A stretch of 63,947 bases of DNA, counting the filler, from Ministeria vibrans ATCC 50519 (taxonomy: Eukaryota; Protista; Filasterea), in assembly GCA_943704425.1 (NCBI GenBank). It is 7 parts of 7 records of this genome, joined end to end, with 100 filler letters (N's around TTAATTAATTAA, not from the genome) between each part and the next. Parts side by side here need not be neighbours in the genome. Positions count along the whole stretch, not along the records: positions 33,004 to 50,130 come from CALSCP010001959.1; 6 more parts are not named here. The stretch is one strand, 5' to 3'. The position numbers and the translations under genes are program-made. The notes below the pieces were generated by a model. It was not told the DNA's origin and made no database searches. It saw only the letters and a list, made by a program, of their open reading frames with translations. Positions 33,004-50,130 of the stretch are shown here, one piece after another. How positions within the stretch are numbered: position 1 is the first letter of the stretch; each line of letters begins with the position of its first letter.

Positions 33004-33690
33004 CATCCACGGAGTGTGTTCCGTGTGAACTGTGTGCTTTGCAAGAAGGATGTGTCTCCCATTAAATTCAAGGCGCATTTAATTCGGTATCACCCTCTGC
33101 AGTTTCCTTCTGGTGTTGGCGACTGGCTGAGTGTGTACTCTTCTCATGTGCGAGTGGAACTGGAGCAGAGGGGCGACCCGCATGAGAATATTGAACGTGA
33201 GATGGGACTGTTGCGGGTCTTTGAACGTGCTCCTTCGCCTTTCCAGGAGTGGCTGCTGCAGGCAGAGAGAGTGCGTGGCAGAGTGGACGAGACTGATCTT
33301 GATGTGGCCTTTGAGCGTTGTGCCGATGGTCGATTCAAATGTCGGATGGAACGACCCGTGTTGGGAGTGCAGTGTAATACGGCGCCATTTGCAAAGGGGA
33401 GCATAGGCACACACTTTGCAGCGTATCATCTTCTGAGTGTGCATCGCACAAAGTGTGTCATTTGTGGCCAATCTCTGAGTCAGGCAAATACTCTCCCTCG
33501 CCACCTTCGTCGATGTCACAGTGATCTATTCGCGTCGGAGGAAAGTCAATGGCGATCTGTGTACGAGAAGGCAGTGCGGAGTGCCTTGGAGAGAGACGGA
33601 GTGGAGGGGAGTGAGATTGAGAGTGAGTTGATGATGTTGTATGAGCATGAGAAAGTGCCCGCTCAATTTCGCCACTGGGTCGCACAATAA
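33004..33690 (+). CDS. C2H2 zinc-finger repeat protein, 5'-truncated
   Basis: CVLC..HLIRYH, CRM..C..HFAAYH, CVIC..HLRRCH. Confidence 0.7.
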   Translation, partial: HPRSVFRVNCVLCKKDVSPIKFKAHLIRYHPLQFPSGVGDWLSVYSSHVRVELEQRGDPHENIEREMGLLRVFERAPSPFQEWLLQAERVRGRVDETDLDVAFERCADGRFKCRMERPVLGVQCNTAPFAKGSIGTHFAAYHLLSVHRTKCVICGQSLSQANTLPRHLRRCHSDLFASEESQWRSVYEKAVRSALERDGVEGSEIESELMMLYEHEKVPAQFRHWVAQ

Positions 33691-33830
33691 ACGCAGTATT
33701 TCTTCTTTAAGAGTGCCTTATTTTTTCCTGTACGCTGATAATTCAAAACATATGCTCCCAAATCAACCACAACAAATCTGTATTAAAAACTGAACCTCAC
33801 ACACAAAAAAATGAAATTTCCTGTTCTTTC

Positions 33831-36800
33831 TTACACAGCAGTGCCTGTGCTTTTCTTTCCCAAACGATCAGCAATATCAAACTGCTGCGTGATTGCTACG
33901 CACTTTGTAAAATGCTCGTGCGACACCGGAACTCCCTGACTGGATGCGAGAGTCTACATAAACAAACATAGTTGGGTCAACATTCAAAGAGACAGTCTGT
34001 TTGTTTTTATCTCACCTGAGCGAGTCTGATTGTCGATTTGATCTGTCGTCCATTAAGACTGGTCTCAGCCAGTCGAGCAGGATCAAGACCAGTACATGAC
34101 AAACCGGCGGCTTCCAACAGATTCCCAAACACCTTAAAAGGAAAACAGCATCAGAATTGTGTATTTTTTATTCTTCTTTGCTGTACCTTTGCGCGTGCGC
34201 TTTGGTCAAGTTCATCGTACTCGAGTGCAACACTCACGCGACTATATTATTATAATTATAATGATTGTTATTATTTTTCTCACATTTTAGAGCTGTTTCT
34301 TTGTTTGTGTGTCGCTCTACCTTGAAAATGCTTTGTCAAAATCAGTCAGTCGATTGGTAGTGAGGAAGAGCACGCCAGAGAAGAACTCAGAGAGACGAAG
34401 GAAGACCGAAGTCATTGCGTTCTTTTCAATGTTGTCACCGCGCTCAGAGAGGAACCTAAAAACATTAACATAATTATGTTTTAATGCTCAACGTTCACAG
34501 ACACTGTCACAGAGAAACGCACGTTGCCAATTTACACAAACTGACACGCGCAACAAAATAAAATAGTAATGATATAACAATTATTATGTCTCATCAGTGT
34601 GCGCTTACACATCCGCTTCATCCACCAACAAAACTGCGTTCCACACTTCAGACAGGTCCAAAATGTTTGCCAGTTTCTCTTCCAACAGCGCTGGAGTGGT
34701 ACCCAAATCGCCAACAGAGACCTACATTTGTATAAGCAAGAAATTAGAAAAAAACTACAATCCAACTGCATTGCAGTGTTTTAGGATACTGTGTAGAGTG
34801 GACGACGCAGAAGATCCGCAATTGCCTCGGCAGTCAGTGTTTTTCCAGTTCCTATACAAAATTCATCAGTTTTTCTTCTCTTCTCTTTCCTTTCCCCTCA
34901 CTCTCAGTCCCACAATCTCTTTCACACACACACACACACACACATCCTCATCCTGTGTCTCTTTTTTTTCTTAATTATTATTCATCCGCAATCGAAAGAT
35001 AAATAATTATATGTTTCATCATACCTGGTGGTCCATGCAGCAGAATAATACATCCCGCTCCCTTTCCCTTGATCACATCCGTAAATGCTGCTCCATGATG
35101 CTCCACAAGAGCTAAAATCACAAAATATTATCAATTAGTGTCAAGATACAACAACCTTTCTAACAAACTAATTAACAATAATTTACCTTTCACAAGAGAT
35201 TTTTTCTCGGGGTCCATCACCAGCTGATCAAACGCACGCGAGTCAAAATCAATGTCCGAAATGGCCTCCACACGAAACTAATAATAAAAATGTTATTATT
35301 ATTATTAGTACTATTATATTAATAATTGCAAAAAAGATTACAACAGAAGTATAATGATGAATGGGCAAAAAGAAACACATGAAACACAAAAATCAAGGTA
35401 TTATCTCAACGAACCTGTCCCCAGCGCTTGTTCTTGAGTGAAAAGCCGTGAATGAAGGGCCAAGTGGTCGCAAGACGCTCTCGCGAAATCGTCATCAAAT
35501 TGCCCTGAGCAGGAACCTAGACGAAAAGAAACGAGTTTCAGGATGGATGACCACTATAACAATAATAATAAAAATACAATAATAATAATAAAATAATAAT
35601 AAAAATATTATAATAATAAAATAATAATATTATTAATTTTTTATTATTATGATTGTATTGTTGGTTGTTCTTACTGGGTTTCCATTCGAATCGTACATCT
35701 GATGTTGAGACGTTCCCACTGAGGAGAAATCCGATGAATTTGGGTTGACCCGCTTGAAGTTCTGCGGGTCGATCATGCACCGACCCTGTGCGGGAATTAG
35801 ACGGTGTGCGGAGTAGCCTGATGTCACAAGCATGTTTCCTATTCAGAAGAAAAGACATTGAAGGAGAAAAATAACACACTCAGTACACATTTCAAAAAAG
35901 ATTGGAAAAAACATGGGAAAAAACAAAAGAATAAACTAGTACCAGAGTATTGCTTGTAGTGAGCTCCCGTCGCAATCGTCTGGAAAATGCGCCCACGTTG
36001 AATCAGACGACGACGAATCGGCTTGCTATATATCAAAAAAAAGTCACAACAAGAAATTATTCCAATTATTCTTATTATTTATGTATTTTTACCTCATGAG
36101 CTGAACTTCGAGTGAGGAAATGTTCTGAACATCATCAAAACTGTAAATCCGAAACGACGTGTTGCAAATGTGGAGTTGCGATCCGTCAGATTTCACCACC
36201 TTTGAGTGAGCCAAACACAAAACAAAACATAACATGATGAGAAAAGTCGCGGGAAATACAATAACGTAATTTATTGTTATTATTGAATACCTCTCCTTCA
36301 ATGGTAAAGACAGAGCCAAAAGGACTGAAAGAGTATCCAACCTACTCAGATAAAATAAATCACCAAACAATGATATAATAAAATATAATATTTTTATTAT
36401 TATAATAATAATAAAAATAATTGTTATTATAATTATTATTATTACCTTTGAGATGCGACTGCCAACGGGCTCATTCTGCTCAAAGCCAACGACAAAGCGA
36501 CCGGGGGCAAAGAGCCACCAAAGGTACTCAAAGGAAATCTGTTTGTCATTGACAAGCGCCTTAATTTTGCGCTGTTCCGACTCAAACTGATGTTCAAGCT
36601 GATGGACCAACAAGAGCACTTCGGGAGTGTGCGAGTACTGGCGCAGCTGCTCCATGTACAGGTAGAGTGAGGACAGAGGGCAGCTGGGGTCTCGCTCGTA
36701 AAACAGTGCGCTGTTGGTAATGTTGCGCAGAGTCTATTAAAATAATAACAATAAAATAATAATAATAAAAAAATATGTTAATTATTGTCATTAATTTAAA

Positions 36801-37346
36801 AGGGTGCTTACATTTGCGAGTACTGGCGACTTTTTCGAGAGAATAGTGATCATTGTGATTGACGGCAGCTCTTCGTTGATAAAGTTCTTGCGCTTCTTGA
36901 GCCAAATCTAACGAAAAACAAACAAACCATGTCAGTCTTCTGTGGATCTTCTGTTGTCGCCCAAAACTCCGAATCGCCTTTGCCAGCTTTACAGTCGACG
37001 CATATACACATGTAGTTTTGAAACACACAAGCAATACCTTGAAAGGCGGGTTGCGGGGCTTTGCGCGCGCTGCAGGAATCTGCAGATCAATGGAGAGCTC
37101 GGCAAGATTGGTGCCGTCGCTGTAGAGCTCTTCGTCGCTGTCCGAGTCGAAGCCGTCGTCGTAGTCCTTCAGCGGCTTGGTCGGCATCGTCATCGCGGCG
37201 TCCACCTCGTCCATCTCGAGCATGCCCGTGGCCCTGCCGGCGCCCTGGTGGTCGTCCCGCACCAGCCGCGCCACCTGCGGGCCAGGGCGCGTCGAGCAGA
37301 TGATCGCCGGCTCCTCCTCTTCAACCGTGGAACAGCAGAAAGGCAT
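33831..37346 (-). CDS. AAA+ ATPase of the fungal/protist family with long N-terminal region (DUF7025-type), many exons
   Basis: Walker A LLHGPPGTGKTLTAE, Walker B VLLVDEADVF, sensor LFLTTNR, FDKAFSSRV; upstream ISFEYLWWLF, IHGFSLKNKRWG, FDQLVMD. Confidence 0.9.
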
Positions 37347-37544
37347 TGGTGTTGGTTTCTGGACGCGCGAGGTGCAGGGAGAAAGGAAAATAGAGAGAGA
37401 GAGAAAAAAAGAGTGTTTACTGGTTGAGTGATCGCTGAATAATTACTGACAACACATTTTGCTCGACCACAAACCCAAAAATAAGATCTCTTTCAATCTT
37501 TACCTTCTGTGCCGCTTGAACGCGTTCTGTTTGCGCCATACCGC

Positions 37545-39510
37545 ATGTACGAGGAATTCGATCGTGTCCTGCTGGTGGCCGAGGCGCAGCAACGCGCGCA
37601 GGGCGAGACGCAGCACAATCCACAAACAACGACTGCTCGCGTCGCCTCTCTGCTGCTCCTCTGCCGCTCCGGCACTCTGACTGCACCGCAATGTCGCGCA
37701 CGGGCCGGCCCGCAGCACCAGGCGCTGCTGGAGGCCCTTGCTCGCCTCGATCCATTCCTCCACTGTCAATTCCATCCCACTGTCAACAACAACAGCCACA
37801 ACAACAGCCCCACCAGCCGTGTCGACGACCCCCGTACACCGCCCCGACGCCCACTCCCCTTGCCGCCCACTGCCCTGTCTGTCTTCGATCGGACTCTCAA
37901 GGCCCATCACGAAAACGACCTCTCAACCATCATCGACTTATCGCCACGCCTTTCCGCCGAGGAATGGACTGCCGTTGCTCGGCAACGCCATGCCGAGTGC
38001 CTTGTCGACCCCAACGCCCTCGTGTTTGCGCTCAATGCGTTTGTGGAGGAAAATGCGCAGGACTTTGTTGACCAAGTCGCTCCGTTGGTTCTCACTGCTC
38101 CCTTGGACGCGCTCCGTCGCCTTGTGCAGGCCGCAGGCGAACACCCGACGCACGCGTGTGCTGTAGTGACGCTCCTCAATCGCCATGGTGGTCTAGCCCG
38201 CCTGCCTGTCGAAGGTGGCGAGCAGCACACAGGCTGGTTTCTGACAGAACATGTCGTTGGACAACTGCTCGACAGTTGGGACGACGAACAGCGCTCACTT
38301 CACCTTCTCTCGCTCCTCCGTCTACTCCACGAACACCATCACATCGACGCCGAACGCATATTCCTCGACTGTGTTGCTTCCGTCGTGTCGGGTGCGCTCG
38401 ACTCCCTCGCCGACGTCGAGTCTGTCTACGAGGCACCGCTTCGCACCGCTCTTGGCTGTGCCTCAGTCCTCTTCCAACTCCCCCAACTCGACACCACCAG
38501 CAAACCACCCGTTCTCACGCCAACACCGCTCCCCTGGCTCCCCACAAACCCCCACATAGCCCAATTTCTTGTCGACACAGCGCGCCTCATCTCTCGCCTT
38601 AGTCCTTTCGCTGTCTCCGACGCACTCATCGACACAGCAGATGCACTTCTGAATCACCTCCAACAACAACTGTCCCTTCTTCTTCTCGAACCACACTCCT
38701 TTTCTCTTCTGTCCGTTGTGCCTCCCATCGACTCGTGTGAACGTTCTGTCACAATCCGCCTGTCCATTCTCTACTCGCCGTCAGACTCTCTACTTCGCTC
38801 CGACTCGCTCAGTCCCTCTCACTTTCTCCGTCTCACTTCGCTCTCTGATCATTTTAACAACACCTCTCTCTTTGTCGATCCCACTGCCATTCCGGAGTTT
38901 TCTCGTTCCAATCTCACTCGCGCACTTGCTGAGACTCTTCCGACTCTCACTCCCACTCAATGGACTCGAATCACACTTTCTGTTCTCCCCTTTTTCTCCA
39001 CTCACTCTCACTACTCCATTCCACTCCTCAGTACTTCAACTCACTCCTTGTCCGAACACAATTGCTACTTGGTCACTGCCCATTTGCTCCTCAGAGTCCT
39101 TTTGGCTCTTCAACTGGATGAAACATCAGAATCCATCACCGTCGCATACTGCATTCAGCGCTTTGTCCCCACTTTTGAAGTACAAGCGGAGAAAAAGTGT
39201 ACCATTTTCGTGCTCAACTCTCTGTGTTTCTCTTTTTTTTTAGGCACTTTTGAAGAAATCGGCTGAATTGGAAGAGCGACTGACCATTGAATCACTCTCA
39301 ATTATGTTTCAGTCCATTTGCACTCTATTGGGTCTCATTGAGCTGTCAGACGATTTGTTTGTCGCAGCACTCGCTCTTACTGGGCTGATCAGAACTCAGG
39401 CTGAGGTCAGATCGGATTCACAGTGGAGTGAGACGTTGCGGGGATTTGTGCAGTGTGTGCGGAATCCGTTGCATAAAACTGCTCTGGAGCGGAAATTATC
39501 ATCAATGTAA
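37545..39510 (+). CDS. Leu-rich alpha-helical hypothetical protein
   Basis: Long ORF from ATG 37545; intron ~39180-39244 joins the 39250-39510 ORF; no motif recognised. Confidence 0.65.
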
Positions 39511-39737
39511 ATAATTTATCTTGTATAAAAAGTATAATAACATATGTGTCTATATATAATGCAAATTACACCACATTCACAAATCACAGCCCGCAGGAGG
39601 CACAAGAAAGTTCTGAAGCAAAAAAAAAATCGAACTGATCGAGAATAGAAAAAATATAATTAATACTGATCGAATATAAATTTTCTCGAATAAGATCACT
39701 CAAAAGTCAAAAAAAGAAACACAGTCAAACACTTCAC

Positions 39738-41740
39738 ATGGACTACAAGGGCTCAAGTGAACGCACACCACTGATACGAGACGCCAAGTTGCCGTCGGCG
39801 GCTGTCGACATCGATTGGACGAGCGAGGATGACTTCGGACCCTCGACGCACAAACCGGCGTCAGCGCGCCTTGTGCGCCGCCGTCGGCTCGTCAAGCCGT
39901 CGAGCCGGGTCCAGGCGCTCTCGCACCTGGCTCTCTCCGGCGACGACAGCGACCGGCACCGCGCGCAGGGCTCAGCAGCAAAAGGCCCCAGCCTCAGCAT
40001 CAACAGCATCCACGACGACGCTTTCCCTGTCCTTCCTACGCGCTTGGGCCGCGTCTCCTGCTACTGCATCGCCGAGCAGTTTGACAAAGAAGGTCTCGCC
40101 GCACACTTGGACGAGCGTCGAGTCGCTCGCGCTCTCGAACTGCCCAACGGAATGGAAATTGTCGAATGGGATTTTGAAGTGCGTCCAGAAGCATTATTTT
40201 TCGTCATGTCAACGTTATGTATAACGCATCCTTTGTGTAGGTGCTTTATATTCCATTTTGGATGAATCGCACAATTTCATTGTCGGCTGGTGTCCCTCAG
40301 CGGTCCGTCTGGCCGCGCGAAGTACTCTACTTCAACTACGGTGCAGTGGTAGCGAACCCATACCTTATACCCACTCATGGCATTCACTCAAACTCACACT
40401 TCTCTTTTAAGGTGATGTGGAATCTCACAGAGCAAGAGGAGGAGTATGTTCTCAAAGACCTAGAACCATTTGAAATCAACAGTCTAAGCGATTCGGAACG
40501 AGAATTGGACGAATTTCGCGTGCGCTGTTCCCCTCAGTCGATTCCCCATCTTGAAAATGACACAGTTGTACTTTCCGCAACCGATTCGTTTCGTGACAAA
40601 ATTGCATTCTCACATGCGCTCGCTCAATCAACGAAACTCTCCGTCATCGAAGGTATAAAAAAAGGTTTTAAAAACCGTCACTTGTTAAGATAACAATTTA
40701 TTGTGTTGCCTGTCGCTCACTTCTGTCACTTGCACTGTTTTTCACGTGTTGCCTGTCGCTCACTCCTGTCACTTGCACTGTTTTTCACGTGTTGCCTGTC
40801 GCTCACTCCTGTCACTTGCACTGTTTTTCACGTATTGCCCCGTCATTTACTGTTTTCAATTTACTGTCACTTGTACTGCTATTTTTCTCATTGTTCCGTC
40901 ACTTGAATTGTCTTTTTCTCTCACTTTCAGAAAGCGTCAACCGCACAGCAGATGATACCCGGTCCATTCCAATGACTCTTGCGCGAACGGGACGTGTTGA
41001 AATGACCCACAAACGCATATCACAGACCATTGGCCGTATTTTAGTTTCCAAAACAGCTGTGAATGCTCTTCCGGACGTGTTAGATAAACCCGAAGTAAGT
41101 TTTGTGTGCCTCTAATTTGGTATAATGAGCAAAGAATATCTAAATAATAATAATTATTATTATATTTTGGTCTGTATTTATTATAATGTCTATCGTACAT
41201 TTAATTGAGTATCAATTTTGTTTTGTGTGTTTGTTCTTGATGTTTATGTTGAATCACTGTGAACATTTGTTTTGGCAAGGATGTCTGATGTCTGCATGCT
41301 TTGTAGTATTTTTGGTCACGAGACGATCACGAGTCACAAGTGTATGACGCAACATACAACTATATGGAGATGAAGAACCGACTGCTGTGTCTGAATACGA
41401 AGATCACGACCATTACGGATGTGCTGGAGGTGTTGAAGGTGCGAGGGAGAGAGCAAAAGAGACGCCCATTGGCAATGAGTGGCTGATTGAGAGTGAGGGA
41501 CTGGTAGAGAGCGATTTTTATTGAGAGTAACATTGTGAGAGGGATTGATTGATGGAAATTGACTGTGTCAATGTGACTGAGAGTGGCACTCGTGGAGAGT
41601 GACTTTTTTAACCCCATCATTAATAGGAACAACGGAACGTGGAAAGCAGTGAGAAGCTTGAAGTGACAGTGATTCTTCTCATTGTCGTTGAGTTGGTCGT
41701 GGGTGTGGCTGGCTGCATCATTGATTATTATCGCACCTAA
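39738..41740 (+). CDS. Rmd1/RMND1 (DUF155) family protein
   Basis: RVSCYCIAEQFD, EVLYFNYGAV-VMWNLT, KIAFSHALAQSTKLSVIE, IPMTLARTG, VLDKPE-YFW, YMEMKNR..LN, C-terminal TM KLEVTVILLIVVE. Confidence 0.9.
40703..40838. repeat. 43-bp tandem repeat x~3 in an Rmd1 intron
   Basis: Unit GTGTTGCCTGTCGCTCACT(C/T)CTGTCACTTGCACTGTTTTTCAC. Confidence 0.92.
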
Positions 41741-42197
41741 CTCAATTCATCCCGAATTCCCTGAACCTAAGCTGTTTTGATGTTTTATTGTTGTTGTTGT
41801 ATGATTCTTTTTATACAGATATAATGTTACTTGGTAAAGGGGATAAGAAGAAGAATGAAGAACTTGCGACGAAAAGAGAGTTTACAGCCAATGTTGACGT
41901 GGAACAGGGCACTTTCTCATACATAATCATCAGTGCACTCTCAATCTCACTCTCACCCTTTCACTCAAGTGCACTCTACACTAACTGAGAAAAGCTCGTA
42001 AACACAAGTCCCTGTGACGCTGTTGAAGCTGGACAGGGGAAGGTGCATGTACAAGAAGGCACGTGTGTGACAACACACACATTGTGCGATGAATGTAATA
42101 AAAAATGATGATTTGCAAAGGGGCGCCATGTCGCAACACCAAACACGGACCGTTCCATCAAACACTCTTTATCTTGTATCTTTGACTAATGATAGAA

Positions 42198-43109
42198 CTA
42201 CGAAAATACATTGGATACTGTCTCACTCAAACCCGCCAGCAGATTTTTGCTCAGAAGTTTTGTCTCGGACTCTTTCCAACCAAGTCGCTCGATCATCGCA
42301 TTGACGTCGCGCATCATTGGTTTGGTGCCCACAACGAGAAAACGCGCGTGGATCGTTTCGCGCTGCTGTTGCCAGTCGCCAAAGACGGTGGAGAGGAGTG
42401 CGTCGCTGGCACGGCCGTGGTGTGCGCCATCAACATGCGTGCGCGAGTAGCTCTTGTGGAAGTCGAACTTGTGGGGGTACTGGAGGGCAAGGCGGTCGAG
42501 CGTCTCGTGGAGGACGGCGTCACTGGGTGTCCGGTTGATGTGCAGCACTCGCACCTGCTGTACGTCGTCGCGGGCGAGCTCGGCCTGCGCCACGTGAACC
42601 ACTTCGGTGATGCCAATGCCCAGGGCAACCATGCCGATGTGGGTGCCGCCGGGCAGTCGCTGCATCTGCTTGAACGGCGGAAAGGGAGCACTCGCGCGAA
42701 TCGACTCGCCAATCTCAAGCGAATCCAAGTAGCGCGAGCAGATGCCGTGCTCATACACCTTGACAGTCAGCTCAAAGGACCCCTTGCGCCCCGCCTCGGA
42801 CGTGGGCGAGTACGACCGCGGCTTGCGCCCCTTCGTGGCGTCCGGCGGGACCTGCCACGTCAGCGGAAGCATCACCTTGACCCGCTCGCCACGCGCCAAA
42901 TCCACGTCCAGCGCCTCGTCCGGCGGCAGCGCGAACGTCAGCTGGATCGTGGGCTCGCCACTCGATCCATTCGTGAGCACTGTCTTGCGCATCAGACTAA
43001 ACGGCCGAAACACCATTGGCAGCGCCTTGCCCGCCGTCTGGCTCAGCATCAGGTAGGCCGAAGTGATCCCAACAACAAATATCAGTAGCCAGGTAAGCCA
43101 GGAGAACAT
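42198..43109 (-). CDS. NADH-cytochrome b5 reductase-like (FNR-fold) oxidoreductase with N-terminal membrane anchor, intronless
   Basis: RSYSPTS, FELTVKVYEHGICSRYL, IGMVALGIGITE, LHINRT, FLVVGTKPM. Confidence 0.85.
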   Translation of the reverse strand: MFSWLTWLLIFVVGITSAYLMLSQTAGKALPMVFRPFSLMRKTVLTNGSSGEPTIQLTFALPPDEALDVDLARGERVKVMLPLTWQVPPDATKGRKPRSYSPTSEAGRKGSFELTVKVYEHGICSRYLDSLEIGESIRASAPFPPFKQMQRLPGGTHIGMVALGIGITEVVHVAQAELARDDVQQVRVLHINRTPSDAVLHETLDRLALQYPHKFDFHKSYSRTHVDGAHHGRASDALLSTVFGDWQQQRETIHARFLVVGTKPMMRDVNAMIERLGWKESETKLLSKNLLAGLSETVSNVFS

Positions 43110-43215
43110 GCAAGAGCGACAGCAAAGGCGTTGTCGCATGCACAAAAAAAAAAAGAGTATTCAAACTAATGATCGGAATTCTTTTCAATCTCGACTCAAT
43201 CTTATTGAATATATT

Positions 43216-43800
43216 ATGGCTGAAGCGTCATCCTCAGCAGACTGCGAACAGGGCGGCGTGGTGGAAATTGACGGATCCACCATGGAGGGCGGAGGCCAAG
43301 GTGACTAAAAAAGCGTTTTCCAAGGTCGATCATTGTGCAATCGGTTTGTCTTGGGGTGTTTTGCGGGGGCGACAGCCGCTCCCGTGCCTCCTCCCATGCG
43401 TCCCTTGGATGATGCGTTGGAATGCGTGCCAGCGACGCAGGGGCAGTCGCGCAGAGATGCTCTTTTGGTGTCGTTTATGATTTTTTTCCTTCCTCTCCTG
43501 AACCATCACACACTCTCTCCTTCCAGTGCTGCGCCAGAGTGCAGCGCTGGCGTGTCTCTTCCAGCGCACCATCCACGTGACCAACATCCGTGCCAAGCGC
43601 TCCAAGCCCGGCCTGCGTGCCCAGCACCTTGCGGGTCTGCAGCTCGTCACTCGGATGGCTGCGGGCTCGCTCACGGGCGGGCACGTCGAGTCGTGCGAGA
43701 TCACCCTCGCCGCACGCGACCTTACACACGGCTCCTTCTCTGCCGATCCCGGAACCGGTGCGAATATCTTGAAAGTTATATCACATCTGATTTTGTGTCG

Positions 43801-43835
<35 letters not shown>

Positions 43836-44696
43836 CAGCCGGAAGTATAATGCTTCTCGTCCAAGTGAGTCTCCCATGCCTTCTCTTTTCGCCGGGCTTC
43901 TCGGAAATCACTCTTCAGGGCGGTACAAATGCCGCAATGGCGCCTCAATACGACTACACAGAACAGGTAAACACACTAATTGATCATTTCCTTCCTCTTA
44001 ACAACACGACGGAAATAGGTTCTTTTGCCCACGCTCAGTCAACGCTTCAACATCACACCCGAAAACATCTCGATTGAGCTTGTGCGCAGAGGGTTTTTTC
44101 CGCGCGGCGGTGGAAAAGTCATTTTGCGATGTAAAAAGCCCGTGCGGTCCCTTCGTCCCGCTCGAATGATCGACCGTGGGACACTTGTCAAGGTATATGC
44201 AATGTTCTTCAGCTTGTTGCAATTTCGTTGAAGTGTGCCTTGGATCGAGTCTGATGGATTTTTCTTTTGTGTTTTCGTAGGTGACTGGTCGATGTTTTGT
44301 GGCCGGGCGAATTCCCGTTGCAGTTGCCATCCGAATGAAAGAAAGTGCAGAGCGCACACTCAGACGGTTTATGCCTGCGAGTGAAAGAGATGTTCCTATT
44401 GATATTCAGGTACAGAATCCCTAACCCTATTGAACCCTCTTACCCAAATCCTAATCCTTACCTTTGCAGATTGTCACCGAACCGTCGTCCATTGCGGTGG
44501 GTGATGGCACGGGAATTTTTCTTGTTGCGCACACTTCCACTGGTTGTCTGATTGCATCTTCTGGTTTGGGTGAAAAGAAAACCAAAGCGGAGCAGGTACA
44601 ATGAACACACAATAATAAAAATAATGTAATATTAGTCATAATAATAATAATAAATTATTATTATTATTACGATTATTATTATTATTACGATTATTA

Positions 44697-44737
<41 letters not shown>

Positions 44738-45319
44738 ATTATTATTATTATTCTGCGTATTACACTTAAAACATTGATACCAACGTGAATGTACAACAAT
44801 GTCGCTTCTGTCCAACCCCTTTTCATTTTTCACTGTCACTCAATGACCGTCTCGCGTATTGTGAATAAGAAGACGATGTATTAATTTGGCAATCTCACTG
44901 GCTTTCAGTCACTTTTCTATTTTGTGACTATGGTTGTCACTGAGTGTCACTCTGACTATCCAAAATACTTAATCATAATTATTATTACTAGGTTGGTGAT
45001 GAGGCAGGCCGTTCGCTCGCCCGTGAACTCTCGCATTCGGGCTGTGTGGATGAGTATTTGGCTGACCAACTCGTTATCTTTATGGCACTTGCTGATGGAA
45101 CATCCCTCATTCGAACAGGTAGCCCTAACCGTGACCTCAACGCGAACTCTAACACGTCATTTTTTGTCCCTAGGTCCTCTTTCGCTTCACACTCAGACTG
45201 CTATTTACTTTGCTGAAAAGATGACCAGTGCGCGGTTTACTGTGACTCCGGTAGAGGGGTCTGACAGTGCGTTTTACATTGAGTGTGTTGGTGCGGCTCT
45301 GTTTAATAAACATCTGTAA
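43216..45319 (+). CDS. RTCA: RNA 3'-terminal phosphate cyclase
   Basis: [52 protein letters not shown], catalytic SLHTQT; about 8 exons. Confidence 0.95.
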
Positions 45320-45486
45320 CAAGTATATTTGTGTTTTTTTATCTGTTCTACTTGAAATGAAGATGAAAAAAGTGTAATTAAGACAAACTCGAGCGCTGTT
45401 TCTTTTGAGTACAAATTTGATATAATATACAAGTTGATTGTTTCGCATCCAAGTCAGACAGACAGACAATGGTCACTGGTCAGTAA

Positions 45487-45750
<264 letters not shown>

Positions 45751-45922
45751 TCACGCACACTCACATAGACCAAGTGAGAACTTGCGCGGAGACCAATCAA
45801 CTCACGAGTGAGATTCAAAGTGATCAACATAAACGACAAACAAAAACATTTTATTTTCTTCTTTTTTTGCCTTCTACCCAATTCAATACCACTCCCCTCT
45901 ACTCGTTTTCTGCTCCATTCCC

Positions 45923-48900
45923 ATGGCGGATCAAGAAGACGACAGCCGTGAAGACGAAATGGTTCGCGTTGACTTTGGGCCGTCGGTTGAACTTGATCGG
46001 GTCGCCTCAGCCGATCCCACGGGCACCTTTGCCTCCCGCCGCGCCCAGCAGCACCCTGTTGTCATGTTTTCCAAGCGCCACTGCCCGTACGTGTTCCCTT
46101 TTTTATAAGACTGTTTGATCTGAAAGTGAAATACACTGATCGCATTGCAGTCACTGCGCACACGCCAAAAGTGTGCTTGCGCGGCACACTGACCACGTCG
46201 AGTGGATTGAGATGGACACACTGACCGCCAGCCAGCAGCACGCCGCCCTGGCTGAGCTCCAGACCCTCCCGTCCCTCTGGATTGGCGGACGGCGTGTCAC
46301 GGGCGATATGGCGCCACTCGACGCGTCGGGCCGTCTGCGGCGCCTCCTCGTCGCCCAATGCGCCGATCAGGTCTACTCCGAGCCTGCCGACGTGCTCCAG
46401 CATGCACCCTTGCCGCCCTTTCTCTTTCCGCTTCACGAGCGCAAGTAAGCAATTCACTCGTGATTAGTCAAATGTCAAACTTGATCGAAATATTTTCACT
46501 TCAGTATTCATTCACACTTTCTTTTTCGCCGTCGTAGGTTTGTTCTCCGTCTTGTCTCTCTCCAAGTTGCAATCGTGTGTATCTTTGGCATTATCTTTCG
46601 CTTCAATGACGTTATGCGCTGGTAATTCACTCACTCACATCTCAAAACAATTCATTCACACACACACACACACACATTTAGGATCATTTGCGCACAAACA
46701 GTCGATTACTTTTTGCGTCTCTTTGCGGGTTCTTCCGGTTCCATTCAGGGCTCACTTGCTAATCTTGTCCTCTCTCCATTTCCTGATTTCCCGTCCAATC
46801 GGCTCATTTGCTCTTGCCACATTCAATTCGCGTCACTATTCGGTCTCCTTTTCACTCTTCTCTCCACTTTGGGTCTCTTTTTCCTCCCAAACTCACTCAA
46901 CGTGCTCTCTGCAATTCTTTTGGGTCTTCTCTCACTGGTCTCTCTGGCCCATTTCGCCTTTGATCTGTCCATTGGCCATTTTCTCTTTTCACTTCTCTTT
47001 CGTTTCCATTGGATCTCGCCCGATCTGTACAATCAGTCCATTGAGACTCTAAAGTCCGCCCAATCCCAACAAACAAAACTCCCGCGTCCCACGTACATCG
47101 AAAATCACGTAAAGAAATTTTTGGAACTCACTTTCTGTACTTACACACAACCACAAACAAATCTTAGACACAACAAAACGAAAACAACCCTCAAACCAAA
47201 TTCAAAGCCAAAAGCAAATTGTACAGACTGAGTGATTTCCATCTGATCCGGCACATTCAGTCAAGCTACTTTACTCCCACAATGGGAATTTTGGGCTTGT
47301 CTTCTGCTTTTAAATCTGCTGGTAATATAATAATAATAATAATTATGATATTTTATTCTTATTATTATTGTTTTTAATATATTTTGATACGATTGGTGTT
47401 AAACTTTTACAAAATAATTAACACTCTTTGCTCTCTTTTTTTCGTTTTTTTTTAGCGAATCAGCCATTTTCACTGATTAGTCCGATTGTCTTTCGCGTTT
47501 GCGCAATTCTTTCGTCCATTGTCTTTCTGCTTCTGCTCACGTTGTACATTCTCAAATGTGTCATTTACCCTCAAAAAGTCAAAAAAGAAGTACCACCTTG
47601 AACAAAAACAAACTTTAAAAAGTGGCTGAGAGTGATTTGTTTTAACATGCGTTTCAACTGTAGATTATGCGTTTGAATGATTTTCACGGATTCGGAACAC
47701 TGTTCATCTCATTTGCGCATCTTTCCGCACTGTCACATAACGAAGTTGCCATTTTGCCCTTTATCTGTTTTGTACGAACTCCCTTAACACTAATTCGATA
47801 TAAACACTACGACGTTTTGTAGTGGATTTCTGTCGGTGGAATGGGAATTGTCAGTTGGGTCACAGTAACTCGGTAAATTTTTCAATCTCTTCTTTCCACT
47901 TACTTACGCACATCTTTTTTTTTCTCTTTTTCTCTCTCTCTCTCTCTTTCTCAGTTGGATCAACAGTGAACACACTCGACACTCACTCGATGTCGCTTGG
48001 ATGATTCCTGTTGTGGGAAACATCGTCCTTTCTTCCTACGCCTCCCAATTCAACTACGATCAGTTGGGCAATTTCCTAATGGCTTTTGCTATGTTTTATT
48101 ACTTGGTTCTCTTTGTCCAAACGTTTGATAAAATGGTCTTTTCGGCCAATTTACGGTTTGACCAGAGACCGCAAATTGCGATTTGGTTGGTTGCTCCATC
48201 ACTCTTTTCAGTCGCAGAGAACAATTTGACGGGAACTTACGATCGAATGGGTAACCAACTACTGTTTTTGTCTTTGACTATGTGTCCAATGTCCTTCTCT
48301 CTCTCTCTCTCCTCTCTCTCTCTATTGCTTTGTATTTTTTTCTCTAACCATTTTCTCTTTTTTCTTTTTACTTCTCTCGTTTAGCACTTCTTTCGTTCTA
48401 TTTCAGTCTCTCTTTGGCTCTCCTTTTCCTGTCTCTTCTCTTTCCTGCCAAATACCTTCTCCTGCCCAATTATCCCCTTCCTATTATCTCCCGCTGGTCT
48501 TTTCTCTTTCCCTTTGTCGCCTTTGCACGCTCCACCCTCAATTTCCACCTCTTTTTTGACACATCATTTTCATACTCTCTCTTTGTCATTTCCTATTCAA
48601 TTACCTCCCTCACTGCCGTACTTCTCCTTTCCCTTTCCCTTACCTCTCTCTTTTCCCGCAAATCCCTTTTCCTCCCACAACAAAAGTTTCTTCCTCTCTC
48701 CGATTTCTCTCTCTCCCTTTCCGGTAACAACAACCCTAACCCCTCAAAATCAACAAAAAACAATTAATTACTGCGACTTTTTTAACACTATAACATAATT
48801 GTGTTAGCACTCGAAATCTCTCTTTTGAATATGAAAGAATATCTTTTGGAATTGGACCAATCTTCAATCAATCGACTTTTCGCGTCGGATCTCACAAAAG

Positions 48901-49619
48901 CTGTCCGGGATTTCACTCAAATTTACTCTGTAAGTCAATAGAATAGAACAAAAAACAAAGTGGAATCTTACCAAACCATATTTTTAGAATGTGGTTGAGA
49001 TTCGAACGGAAATTCTTTTTCCCACTCTGAGTCTGTATTTTGAGACGGAGACAGTTCAAAAGGAACACAAAAGTGCTCTTTTGTTGCTCAATCAAAATTT
49101 CACTGCGCTCTCTCACTTTTCATTTGATTCCGTAACGCCAAAAAAAGTTCTGTAAAAAAAATTCTGATTGTTTCTGTTTAGGATTTGAGTGAGATCCGAA
49201 ATGGATTGAAAAACGCGTTTGAATTGGTCGAGAAATCCCTCACAACTGAACAATTAATCATTGATAATCTGATCAGGAAGTTAGTCCCAACAGACTTACA
49301 ACTAAGAGTAAGATCAAAATAATAGAATGAATGATAGTAATAATTATTAGTATTATAATAATTAAATTTTATTTCGTTTCGTTTGTAGTTGATTGAGAAG
49401 TCGTTTGAAAGGTTCCCCACGGAATTTATTGATGGAATTATTCCGTTCACCGTTTCACAGTTGCACTCGGATGGGGATAGTGTGCGATTTTTACGGTCGT
49501 TTTCCGACTCGCTCTCACCAAAGCAGTCTAAAGTGATTATAAGTGCGCTGAAGAACCCACGCACTCAGTTTAGGGTGAGAAGTGCTCAGTTGACAAGGCT
49601 CCTTCAATTTGAACTGTAA
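45923..49619 (+). CDS. Multidomain fusion: glutaredoxin + DUF4395-like membrane domain + TDT/SLAC1 (TehA-like) anion channel + degenerate hemerythrin-like domain; about 14 exons
   Basis: VVMFSKRHCPHCAHAK (across intron 46087-46150), TLPSLWIGG; FLFP..LRLVSLQV..DYFLRLFAG..IQFASLFG; YFTPTMGILGLSSAF, LYILKCVIYPQKVKKE, WMIPVVGN, IWLVAPS, WSFLFP; EILFPTL..QKEH. Confidence 0.78.
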
Positions 49620-50077
49620 CTTAAATTGTAATAATCTAGTACTATAAAAAAGAAAGAAAGACAAGCGCCCTTATACAATTATGAATAGGCACTCTCTCAT
49701 GCCCATACACAATCAATAATCCACTCGCTCACTCTTTCCATTTCAATATTGCACTCCGCACACAACAACTGTACGCACTCATCCCATTTGAAGTCGAAGC
49801 AGTCCCATTAGCACACAGGTAACAATGCAGACATGAAGTTGATACACACTCTACACGTTGATTAAACTACTGCACCTCCCCTTTGTAAACAACGCCTGTC
49901 ACACACTCGTCTCGTTGCCGGTCGCGCCATTCCGCATTTAATAAACAAACACAAAAGTTAACAAAGAAATATAAATATTATTTTTCACTAGAAGTCCTTC
50001 TCGCACTGACACTCGCTCAATCTCTCTCAATCACTCACTCGCACACACAATTCAGCTCTCTATCACTTTGTTTCTCC

Positions 50078-50119
<42 letters not shown>

Positions 50120-50130
50120 GCACACTCACA

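Follow-up and report, generated by a model that had tools for sequence, protein, structure and literature searches.

A predicted, highly divergent glutaredoxin-DUF4395-SLAC1-hemerythrin fusion gene in the filasterean Ministeria vibrans

The window analysed here is a stretch of 63,947 nucleotides, filler included, in which seven parts of seven records of the Ministeria vibrans ATCC 50519 genome (GCA_943704425.1) are joined end to end. The analysis was confined to the piece at positions 33004-50130 (CALSCP010001959.1), and all coordinates are those of the whole stretch. The plus strand of this piece carries at 45923-49619 a predicted intron-containing gene, whose product would combine a glutaredoxin (Grx), a DUF4395 membrane domain, a channel of the TDT/SLAC1 kind and a helical tail derived from hemerythrin. 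A preliminary description of this DNA had proposed such a fusion and had presented it as a candidate redox-regulated anion channel. The best explanation of the locus as a whole, to which a probability of about 0.7 is assigned, is that of a single gene, a divergent member of a conserved protein family, in which the pore is probably kept and the sensing mostly lost.

By reading of the sequence and by a script check, 14 exons of the plus strand (45923-49619) join into 2673 nt, corresponding to 890 codons and a stop. The 13 introns all have GT-AG borders, starting with GTA and ending with YAG, and measure 50-134 nt; their GC content is 0.16-0.38, versus 0.37-0.66 for the exons. Twelve of them contain an in-frame stop and intron 4 breaks the frame instead, so that the removal of all 13 is obligatory. 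The splicing of fragmentary open reading frames (ORFs) into one frame, as put forward initially, is thus borne out. The ATG at 45923 is the first methionine downstream of an in-frame stop at 45830. It had also been noticed that the CPHC motif of the glutaredoxin exists only after the removal of the intron at 46087-46150, and this proved correct: the motif is a splice product (TGC CC / T CAC TGC, the slash marking the junction) assembled across 46082-46086 and 46151-46157. When intron 1 is retained, the frame reads CPYV and meets a stop seven codons later. The exons are listed in Table 1 together with the neighbouring features. For this gene, Pfam scans and profile searches were run on single exons, and the structure models are those of database relatives only.

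Table 1. Predicted exons of the fusion gene, with their matches to the profile of the fusion family, followed by the other features of the piece (TM, transmembrane helix)
Feature	Coordinates	Strand	Content and basis	Family profile positions and E-value
Exon 1	45923..46086	+	Acidic N-terminus; Grx beta-1 'HPVVMFSKRHC'; bases 1 and 2 of the CPHC proline codon; donor GTACGT	13-48, E=0.0074
Exon 2	46151..46444	+	CPHC completed (H 46152-46154, C 46155-46157); remaining Grx fold, TLP cis-Pro, IGG; 'FLFP', the motif that starts the DUF4395 domain in the fusion family; Pfam Glutaredoxin E=0.012, partial domain	43-130, E=5e-5
Exon 3	46538..46621	+	DUF4395 membrane helix 1	163-190, E=3e-4
Exon 4	46682..47108	+	DUF4395 core; Pfam DUF4395 E=1.3e-6, 29.1 bits (cut-off 24.5)	185-320, E=2e-20
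Exon 5	47168..47321	+	Family linker 'KFKAKS..SDFHLIRH', then SLAC1 TM1 'MGILGLSSAF'	342-391, E=5e-9
Exon 6	47456..47589	+	SLAC1 TM2, C-terminal 'YPQKVKKE'; Pfam SLAC1 E=5.6e-5	398-436, E=2e-9
Exon 7	47664..47771	+	SLAC1 TM3 and beginning of TM4; opens with 'MRLNDF', resembling 'lRsNsF' of the family (read against the family alignment); basis: frame, GT-AG sites, motif	
Exon 8	47823..47872	+	50 nt; 'WISVGG..', resembling TM4 'WIGA' of the family; basis: phase, splice sites, motif; least certain exon of the model	
Exon 9	47955..48250	+	SLAC1 TM5-TM7, 'VAWMIPVVGN' and 'RPQIAIWLVAPS'; Pfam SLAC1 E=2.2e-9, 37.3 bits (cut-off 27.9)	478-625, E=5e-16
Exon 10	48385..48723	+	SLAC1 TM8-TM10, gate motif 'RWSFLFP', post-channel family motif 'LFLPQQKFLPLS'	605-710, E=6.5e-10
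Exon 11	48808..48929	+	Helical tail, first part; basis: phase and splice sites	
Exon 12	48988..49131	+	'VVEIRTEILFP...KEH', resembling 'HsqHEDxviFP...H' of the family	Place as expected, E=1.8 alone
Exon 13	49182..49307	+	'EKSLTTEQLIIDNLIRKLVP', resembling 'eHlxxEEdxLxxixRKyxP' of the family	815-856, E=0.0068
Exon 14	49389..49619	+	Tail end and stop	857-894, E=0.014, continuous with exon 13
Reductase gene	42201-43109	-	Single exon, 303 residues; FAD_binding_6/NAD_binding_1, cytochrome b5 reductase-like	
RMND1/DUF155 gene	39738-41112	+	Multi-exon; Pfam matches in two separate ORFs	
ORF of 585 residues	37509-39263		No Pfam match	
ORF with DUF7025	36092-36655	-		
Microsatellites	45470-45770		(CA)n, (ACA)n/(ACAAC)n and (CT)n, immediately before the start codon	
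Microsatellite	44640-44830		(AAT/ATT)n, farther upstream	
Microsatellite	50070-50125		(CT)n, at the edge of the piece	

The unity of the gene is best seen with a family profile derived from 29 full-length relatives, which was compared with the full set of 619 stop-to-stop ORFs from the piece. E-values below 0.02 were obtained for ten exons of the gene only, all on the plus strand and strictly in profile order, between positions 13 and 894 of 939, and the remaining ORFs scored at least 0.9. This colinear ten-exon match exceeds chance. The end of the glutaredoxin and the beginning of DUF4395 are moreover held together in exon 2, an uninterrupted ORF. The same stretch could also be read as two or three adjacent genes, encoding respectively a Grx-DUF4395 protein, a SLAC1 channel and a helical protein, that share a single frame in appearance only: exon 4 can be read onward to a stop at 47229 and exon 10 to a stop at 48765, and the ATG at 48831 in exon 11 is a possible start for a separate tail gene. 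The channel part, however, would have no start of its own, because the stop at 47165-47167 immediately precedes exon 5 in frame and the first ATG (47282) lies inside TM1. Linker motifs specific to the family (YKxKTDD..DFxxIRH and KWGPLS) are present as 'KFKAKS..DFHLIRH' before the channel and as 'QKFLPLS' after it, flanking both sides of each junction, and the same order is found within single chains in the relatives, including complete ORFs derived from transcripts. A set of separate genes is, on this evidence, highly improbable. The prediction that exons 1-14 form one gene encoding one membrane protein of 890 residues is confirmed at the level of the sequence, and the four-domain architecture and the family assignment of the M. 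vibrans gene are both very probable.

The family itself was reached through exon 4. A phmmer search of this exon against 1.84 billion representatives returned two matches: an 829-residue protein of Mesostigma (P0001), in which Pfam recognizes DUF4395, SLAC1 and Hemerythrin, and a repeat protein (P0002) that was rejected as spurious. Word-index searches seeded with the Mesostigma protein, and then with the family alignment, yielded about 40 relatives of 700-1100 residues, most of which contain Glutaredoxin, DUF4395, SLAC1 and Hemerythrin in a single chain according to Pfam. They include proteins of the green algae Chlamydomonas reinhardtii (CHLRE_13g584200v5, A8HU96), C. incerta, C. schloesseri, Chlamydomonas sp. 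UWO241, Gonium (GPECTOR_36g72), Tetrabaena, Edaphochlamys (HYH03_004784), Micractinium and Nannochloris. Outside the green algae, members were found in the diatom Epithemia (ACA910_004342), in the streptophyte alga Mesostigma (Mv09251) and in the filasterean Capsaspora (CAOG_07723), which gave the best tblastn match to the fusion, at about 30% identity. Transcriptome assemblies (MMETSP, Trinity) contain several of the relatives as complete ORFs, so that the fusion is a single transcript in these organisms. All four Pfam domains occur together in one such complete MMETSP ORF (P0003) and in the C. reinhardtii protein (P0042). In the family variants, a thioredoxin-fold domain still comes first: one protein has an Rdx/selenoprotein-type domain in place of the glutaredoxin, and three have an added GST_N domain. 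Some of the proteins bear automatic database names. The domain order initially announced for M. vibrans (Grx, DUF4395, TDT/SLAC1, hemerythrin-derived tail) is therefore that of its relatives, as it is that of its ten colinear exons.

The AlphaFold2 (AF2) model of the C. reinhardtii protein (pLDDT 85.7, pTM 0.82) was compared with solved structures, and resembled the channels SLAH1 (Z 39.6) and TehA (Z 38.4 over 304 residues, 2.0 A), the glutaredoxin GrxC5 (Z 17.9) and the hemerythrins DcrH (Z 12.2) and FBXL5 (Z 10.1). Channels of the TDT/SLAC1 kind are known; databases contain the four-domain fusion, but the literature searched does not describe it. That search returned no paper on the function of DUF4395 or on the Chlamydomonas gene, and none that combines SLAC1 with hemerythrin, or TehA with both glutaredoxin and hemerythrin, in keeping with the original suspicion that the architecture might exist unstudied in algae and other protists. 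The M. vibrans protein was not among the matches of a profile search that included its exon rows, and two scans of metagenome contigs returned no close relative of it.

Two observations touch the limits of this family. A 3459-nt contig of a metagenome-assembled genome labelled 'Myxococcales' (JAAEPE010000667.1, L002:581-3187) carries an uninterrupted ORF of 869 residues with a partial Grx, DUF4395, SLAC1 and a tail, with 31% identity to residues 40-939 of the Chlamydomonas protein; it is either a true intronless bacterial fusion or a mis-binned eukaryotic contig. Glutaredoxin and DUF4395 are also found together without a channel, in two proteins of about 490 residues (P0014 and P0018) and in a third (P0017) fused to a CRAL_TRIO lipid-binding domain. 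From these proteins, the Grx-DUF4395 pair looks like a conserved module for which the channel is one of several partners.

In the channel part of the M. vibrans protein, the ten-helix hydrophobic pattern is kept. So is the gate phenylalanine, which lies in 'WSFLFP' of exon 10 (48507-48509) and aligns through 'WavsFP' of the family with 'WAFSFP' of TehA (3m72), in which F262 is the phenylalanine preceding the proline. The pore-occluding phenylalanine on TM9 is F262 in TehA and F450 in SLAC1. With these pore hallmarks kept, the M. vibrans protein is most likely still able to conduct or carry an anion.

In the glutaredoxin part, 'VVMFSKRHC-P-HC' places a CxxC motif after beta-1, aligned with the CPFC of the family, so that M. 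vibrans has CPHC versus CPFC in its relatives. The TLP cis-Pro motif is present, and the TLP..IGG signature of the preliminary description was indeed located in exon 2. A Pfam check on the four families gave a divided outcome: DUF4395 and SLAC1 were recovered above their cut-offs, Glutaredoxin was not (16.2 versus 22.9 bits for exon 2, E=0.012, the domain being split by an intron and one exon being scanned), and the tail exons 11-14 matched neither Hemerythrin nor any other Pfam family at E<=10. Compared with the Protein Data Bank (PDB), exon 2 matches glutaredoxins at E-values of 0.2-1 only; the top matches of this search, leucine-rich-repeat Roco proteins, were dismissed as a repeat artefact produced by summed weak repeats. 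A break in composition occurs within the gene. Exons 1-2 (45923-46444) resemble the remaining genes of the piece in being GC-rich, with a GC content of 0.61-0.66 and a GC content at third codon positions (GC3) of 0.65-0.77; exons 3-14 (46538-49619) are pyrimidine-rich, with a GC content of 0.37-0.48 and a GC3 of 0.38-0.51. The Grx exons could be a later acquisition, or the remaining gene could be under a different evolutionary pressure.

The DUF4395 domain can be compared with a large bacterial set. A pattern scan of prokaryotic genomes gave 157 stand-alone relatives, mainly from Chloroflexota, Actinomycetota and Leptospira. Among 45 aligned bacterial sequences, F-P, GPPKRFAQ, E..GFCxGC and a second, C-terminal pair P..VCxxC are invariant. 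FCxGC and GPPK[QR]FA are invariant in 31 eukaryotic and 45 bacterial sequences, the bacterial invariance being partly by construction, as this set was gathered with the FCxGC pattern. The stand-alone bacterial proteins thus have four invariant cysteines, CxGC and then VCxxC 17 residues toward the C-terminus. In the AF2 models of the Chlamydomonas protein and of a Leptospira DUF4395 (pLDDT 84.4), CxGC is found in a turn after the fourth long helix, and both models place it on the same side of the membrane as the N-terminus. Such a position would suit a thiol relay, or else a four-cysteine metal site shared by CxGC and the soluble CxxC. In the family, the CxGC of DUF4395 is the likeliest partner of the glutaredoxin dithiol. 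Five of the 45 bacterial proteins weakly match (E=0.056) the YgaP-like transmembrane domain of membrane rhodaneses, and a ThiS-ThiF-rhodanese gene adjoins the DUF4395 start in five bacterial loci.

The di-iron ligands of the family tail are H725, H769-x3-E773, H796 and H837-x3-E841 in the numbering of P0003. Two of these six remain in M. vibrans, H796 and E841; H769, E773 and H837 are replaced by V, R and S, and H725 possibly by L, the first hemerythrin histidine of the family ('LTHEAFR') being unrecognizable in exon 11, which has no Pfam or profile match. Exon 13 likewise reads 'KSLTTEQ' versus 'eHlxxEE' in the family, with His changed to Ser, the first Glu kept and the second changed to Gln. 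The helix spacing has been maintained: 59 residues separate 'PLS' from 'iFP' in M. vibrans versus 61 in the family, and the interval between the last two ligand positions is 40 residues versus 41 in P0003. The term 'pseudo-hemerythrin', proposed at the outset for a tail with EILFP..EH spacing, turns out to be well chosen. Given that only two of the six ligands are left, a hemerythrin-derived helical bundle unable to hold a di-iron centre would be a fair description of it. In exon 14, the 'WAMPERAQ..PEIIPRG..RYY' block that ends the family proteins is absent, and the 13 conserved C-terminal columns are unaligned.

Several points weigh against the interpretation of this locus as a functional member of the family. 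The gene model is a prediction from genomic DNA, and exons 7, 8, 11 and 12 have individually no significant homology signal with the family profile; they occupy the gaps expected in the profile, and their motifs ('MRLNDF', 'WISVGG') and lengths agree. The invariant D-F-C-x-G-C of DUF4395 has become D-L-S-I-G-H in exon 4 (S 46968-46970, H 46977-46979), where GPPKQFA reads CSCHIQFA. The GG/CDD glutathione-binding motif of the glutaredoxin is degenerate, 'GGCDD' of the family having changed to 'TG-DM', which makes glutathione binding by the M. vibrans domain doubtful. In the 29 members, 53 columns show a conservation of at least 90%, of which any one member retains 45-53; M. vibrans keeps 20, with 16 changed and 17 unalignable. 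In a tree based on the exon-4 region, in which bacterial DUF4395 forms a separate 100/100 clade, its end branch measures 2.67 versus a median of 0.29 (9x), and this exon has a skewed amino-acid composition and no supported placement. The Leptospira model resembled generic four-helix bundles only and no specific solved relative (Foldseek best E 0.83; VIA best Z 9.0), and a DsbB/VKOR-like oxidoreductase role for DUF4395 is neither supported nor excluded by it. No experiment on any member of the family was found in the literature, and we infer channel activity, substrate and sensing through domain homology.

Low column conservation and a long branch would fit a decaying copy too. Such a paralogue would be a relic, perhaps unexpressed, that has lost selection for the original function. 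The change of 16 of the 36 aligned conserved columns beside 17 unalignable ones, the length of the end branch, the deviant composition, the pyrimidine-rich, low-GC exons 3-14 beside GC-rich exons 1-2, and the loss of CxGC, of GPPKQFA, of four ligands in the hemerythrin tail and of the entire C-terminal conserved block all point in this direction. A neutral relic of such divergence would however be expected to carry stops, whereas the 890 codons of the 14 exons are open and free of frameshifts, the 13 splice sites are all canonical, and the ten-helix hydrophobic pattern has been preserved together with the gate phenylalanine, the linker motifs and the spacing of the hemerythrin helices. Decay is given a small probability in consequence, and the M. 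vibrans gene is best regarded as a very divergent, fast-evolving and degenerate member of a conserved, uncharacterised eukaryotic family.

A mechanism can be outlined for the family before it is considered for this member. The chain runs from a thioredoxin-fold domain, in most cases a glutaredoxin with CPFC, to DUF4395 with its CxGC at the membrane surface, then to a ten-helix SLAC1/TehA channel and finally to a hemerythrin four-helix bundle. The termini of the SLAC1 domain are cytosolic in solved channels; with four DUF4395 helices and ten SLAC1 helices, the protein would therefore have 14 membrane helices and place the glutaredoxin, the DUF4395-SLAC1 linker and the hemerythrin tail in the cytosol. 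The SLAC1 pore, plugged by a phenylalanine as in TehA and SLAC1, would conduct a small anion. A first sensor, for O2, iron or an oxidant, might be the di-iron hemerythrin fused directly to TM10, and a second might be a thiol couple made of the Grx CxxC and the CxGC of DUF4395. Sensor-gated anion conduction in the family can be proposed tentatively, at somewhat less than even odds.

For the M. vibrans protein specifically, any remaining sensing would depend on the CPHC of the glutaredoxin alone, and the hemerythrin-like tail would be a structural or docking remnant. Since CxGC is lost, the Grx GG/CDD motif degenerate and only 20 of 53 conserved columns kept, the thiol-redox-gated channel initially imagined must be considered unlikely for this copy. 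The most novel proposal is likewise unlikely: the family would form a new class of sensor-gated anion channels, combining an O2/iron hemerythrin on TM10 with a thiol relay, from which the M. vibrans variant would have discarded the metal site and CxGC, answering to the Grx dithiol or to nothing.

The thiols of the glutaredoxin and DUF4395 could alternatively serve the handling of a substrate instead of gating, by reducing or handing over a thiol-reactive oxyanion (sulfite, selenite or tellurite) moved by the TDT domain. TehA, a tellurite-resistance protein, and Ssu1, a sulfite pump, both belong to the TDT family. The member with an Rdx/selenoprotein-type domain and those with an added GST_N would suit such a role, as would the thiol or sulfur genes (gamma-glutamyltranspeptidase, CysM-like or ThiS-ThiF-rhodanese) that adjoin some bacterial DUF4395 genes. 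Each of these neighbours, however, recurs in only 5-6 of 80 loci, a weak association; the neighbourhood is not conserved in this set, no neighbour family being present in more than 11 loci. The hemerythrin is left unexplained by substrate handling, and the M. vibrans copy is without CxGC. This alternative is given a low probability, and the pore-retaining, largely sensor-less family member is preferred for M. vibrans.

The genes that neighbour the fusion are eukaryotic (Table 1). A protein identical to the reductase encoded upstream is recorded only on a 1.6-kb ENA metagenome contig (ERZ23497376, SCHR19-1_SAMN09406036), and its nearest named relative is 43% identical, which suggests that the source organism is sparsely sampled. 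Long microsatellites flank the fusion gene on both sides.

The interest of this locus lies primarily in the family that it reveals. We know of no SLAC1-type member described as gated by a built-in redox, oxygen or iron sensor. Conservation of the fusion extends from green algae and a streptophyte alga to diatoms and to a unicellular organism closely related to animals. The family is testable and has an orthologue (Cre13.g584200) in the tractable model Chlamydomonas. It also gives DUF4395 a first functional context, a thioredoxin-fold CxxC domain always preceding it in eukaryotes and a second CxxC following it in bacteria. The M. vibrans copy, as a degenerate outlier, is mainly useful as a natural 'ligand-less' comparison to the canonical proteins.

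The fusion family can finally be set beside the systems from which its parts are known. In plant guard cells, SLAC1-type channels are known as anion valves gated by phosphorylation; TehA is bacterial. The plant SLAC1/SLAH channels and Haemophilus influenzae TehA (7wnq, 9m7s, 3m71) have the same ten-helix TDT fold as the fusion family, and the pore-plugging phenylalanine of TehA is conserved in this family and in the M. vibrans copy. The difference lies in the termini: plant S-type anion channels are gated through the phosphorylation of disordered termini, whereas those of the fusion are folded, with a glutaredoxin and a four-helix membrane domain ahead of the channel and a hemerythrin bundle behind it. 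Stand-alone bacterial DUF4395 (PF14340) shares with the eukaryotic fusions the four-helix membrane domain, F-P, GPPK[QR]FA and E..GFCxGC. The bacterial proteins, of about 160 residues, end in 'P..VCxxC'; the eukaryotic fusions are devoid of this second pair and have the N-terminal Grx CxxC, and the M. vibrans copy, unlike bacterial DUF4395, has neither CxGC nor the second pair. With FBXL5, DcrH-Hr and the bacterial HHE proteins (PF01814), the family tail shares H-HxxxE-H-HxxxE, and it matches DcrH, NMB1532 and FBXL5 at Z 10-12; compared with these hemerythrin sensor domains, the M. vibrans tail keeps the helix spacing, but one His and one Glu only. The M. vibrans copy has in common with the algal and protist fusions the domain order, the linker motifs, the gate phenylalanine and a colinear profile from glutaredoxin to tail; it differs from them by an identity of 25-40% and by the loss of CxGC, GPPKQFA, four of the six ligands and the C-terminal PEIIPRG..RYY block.

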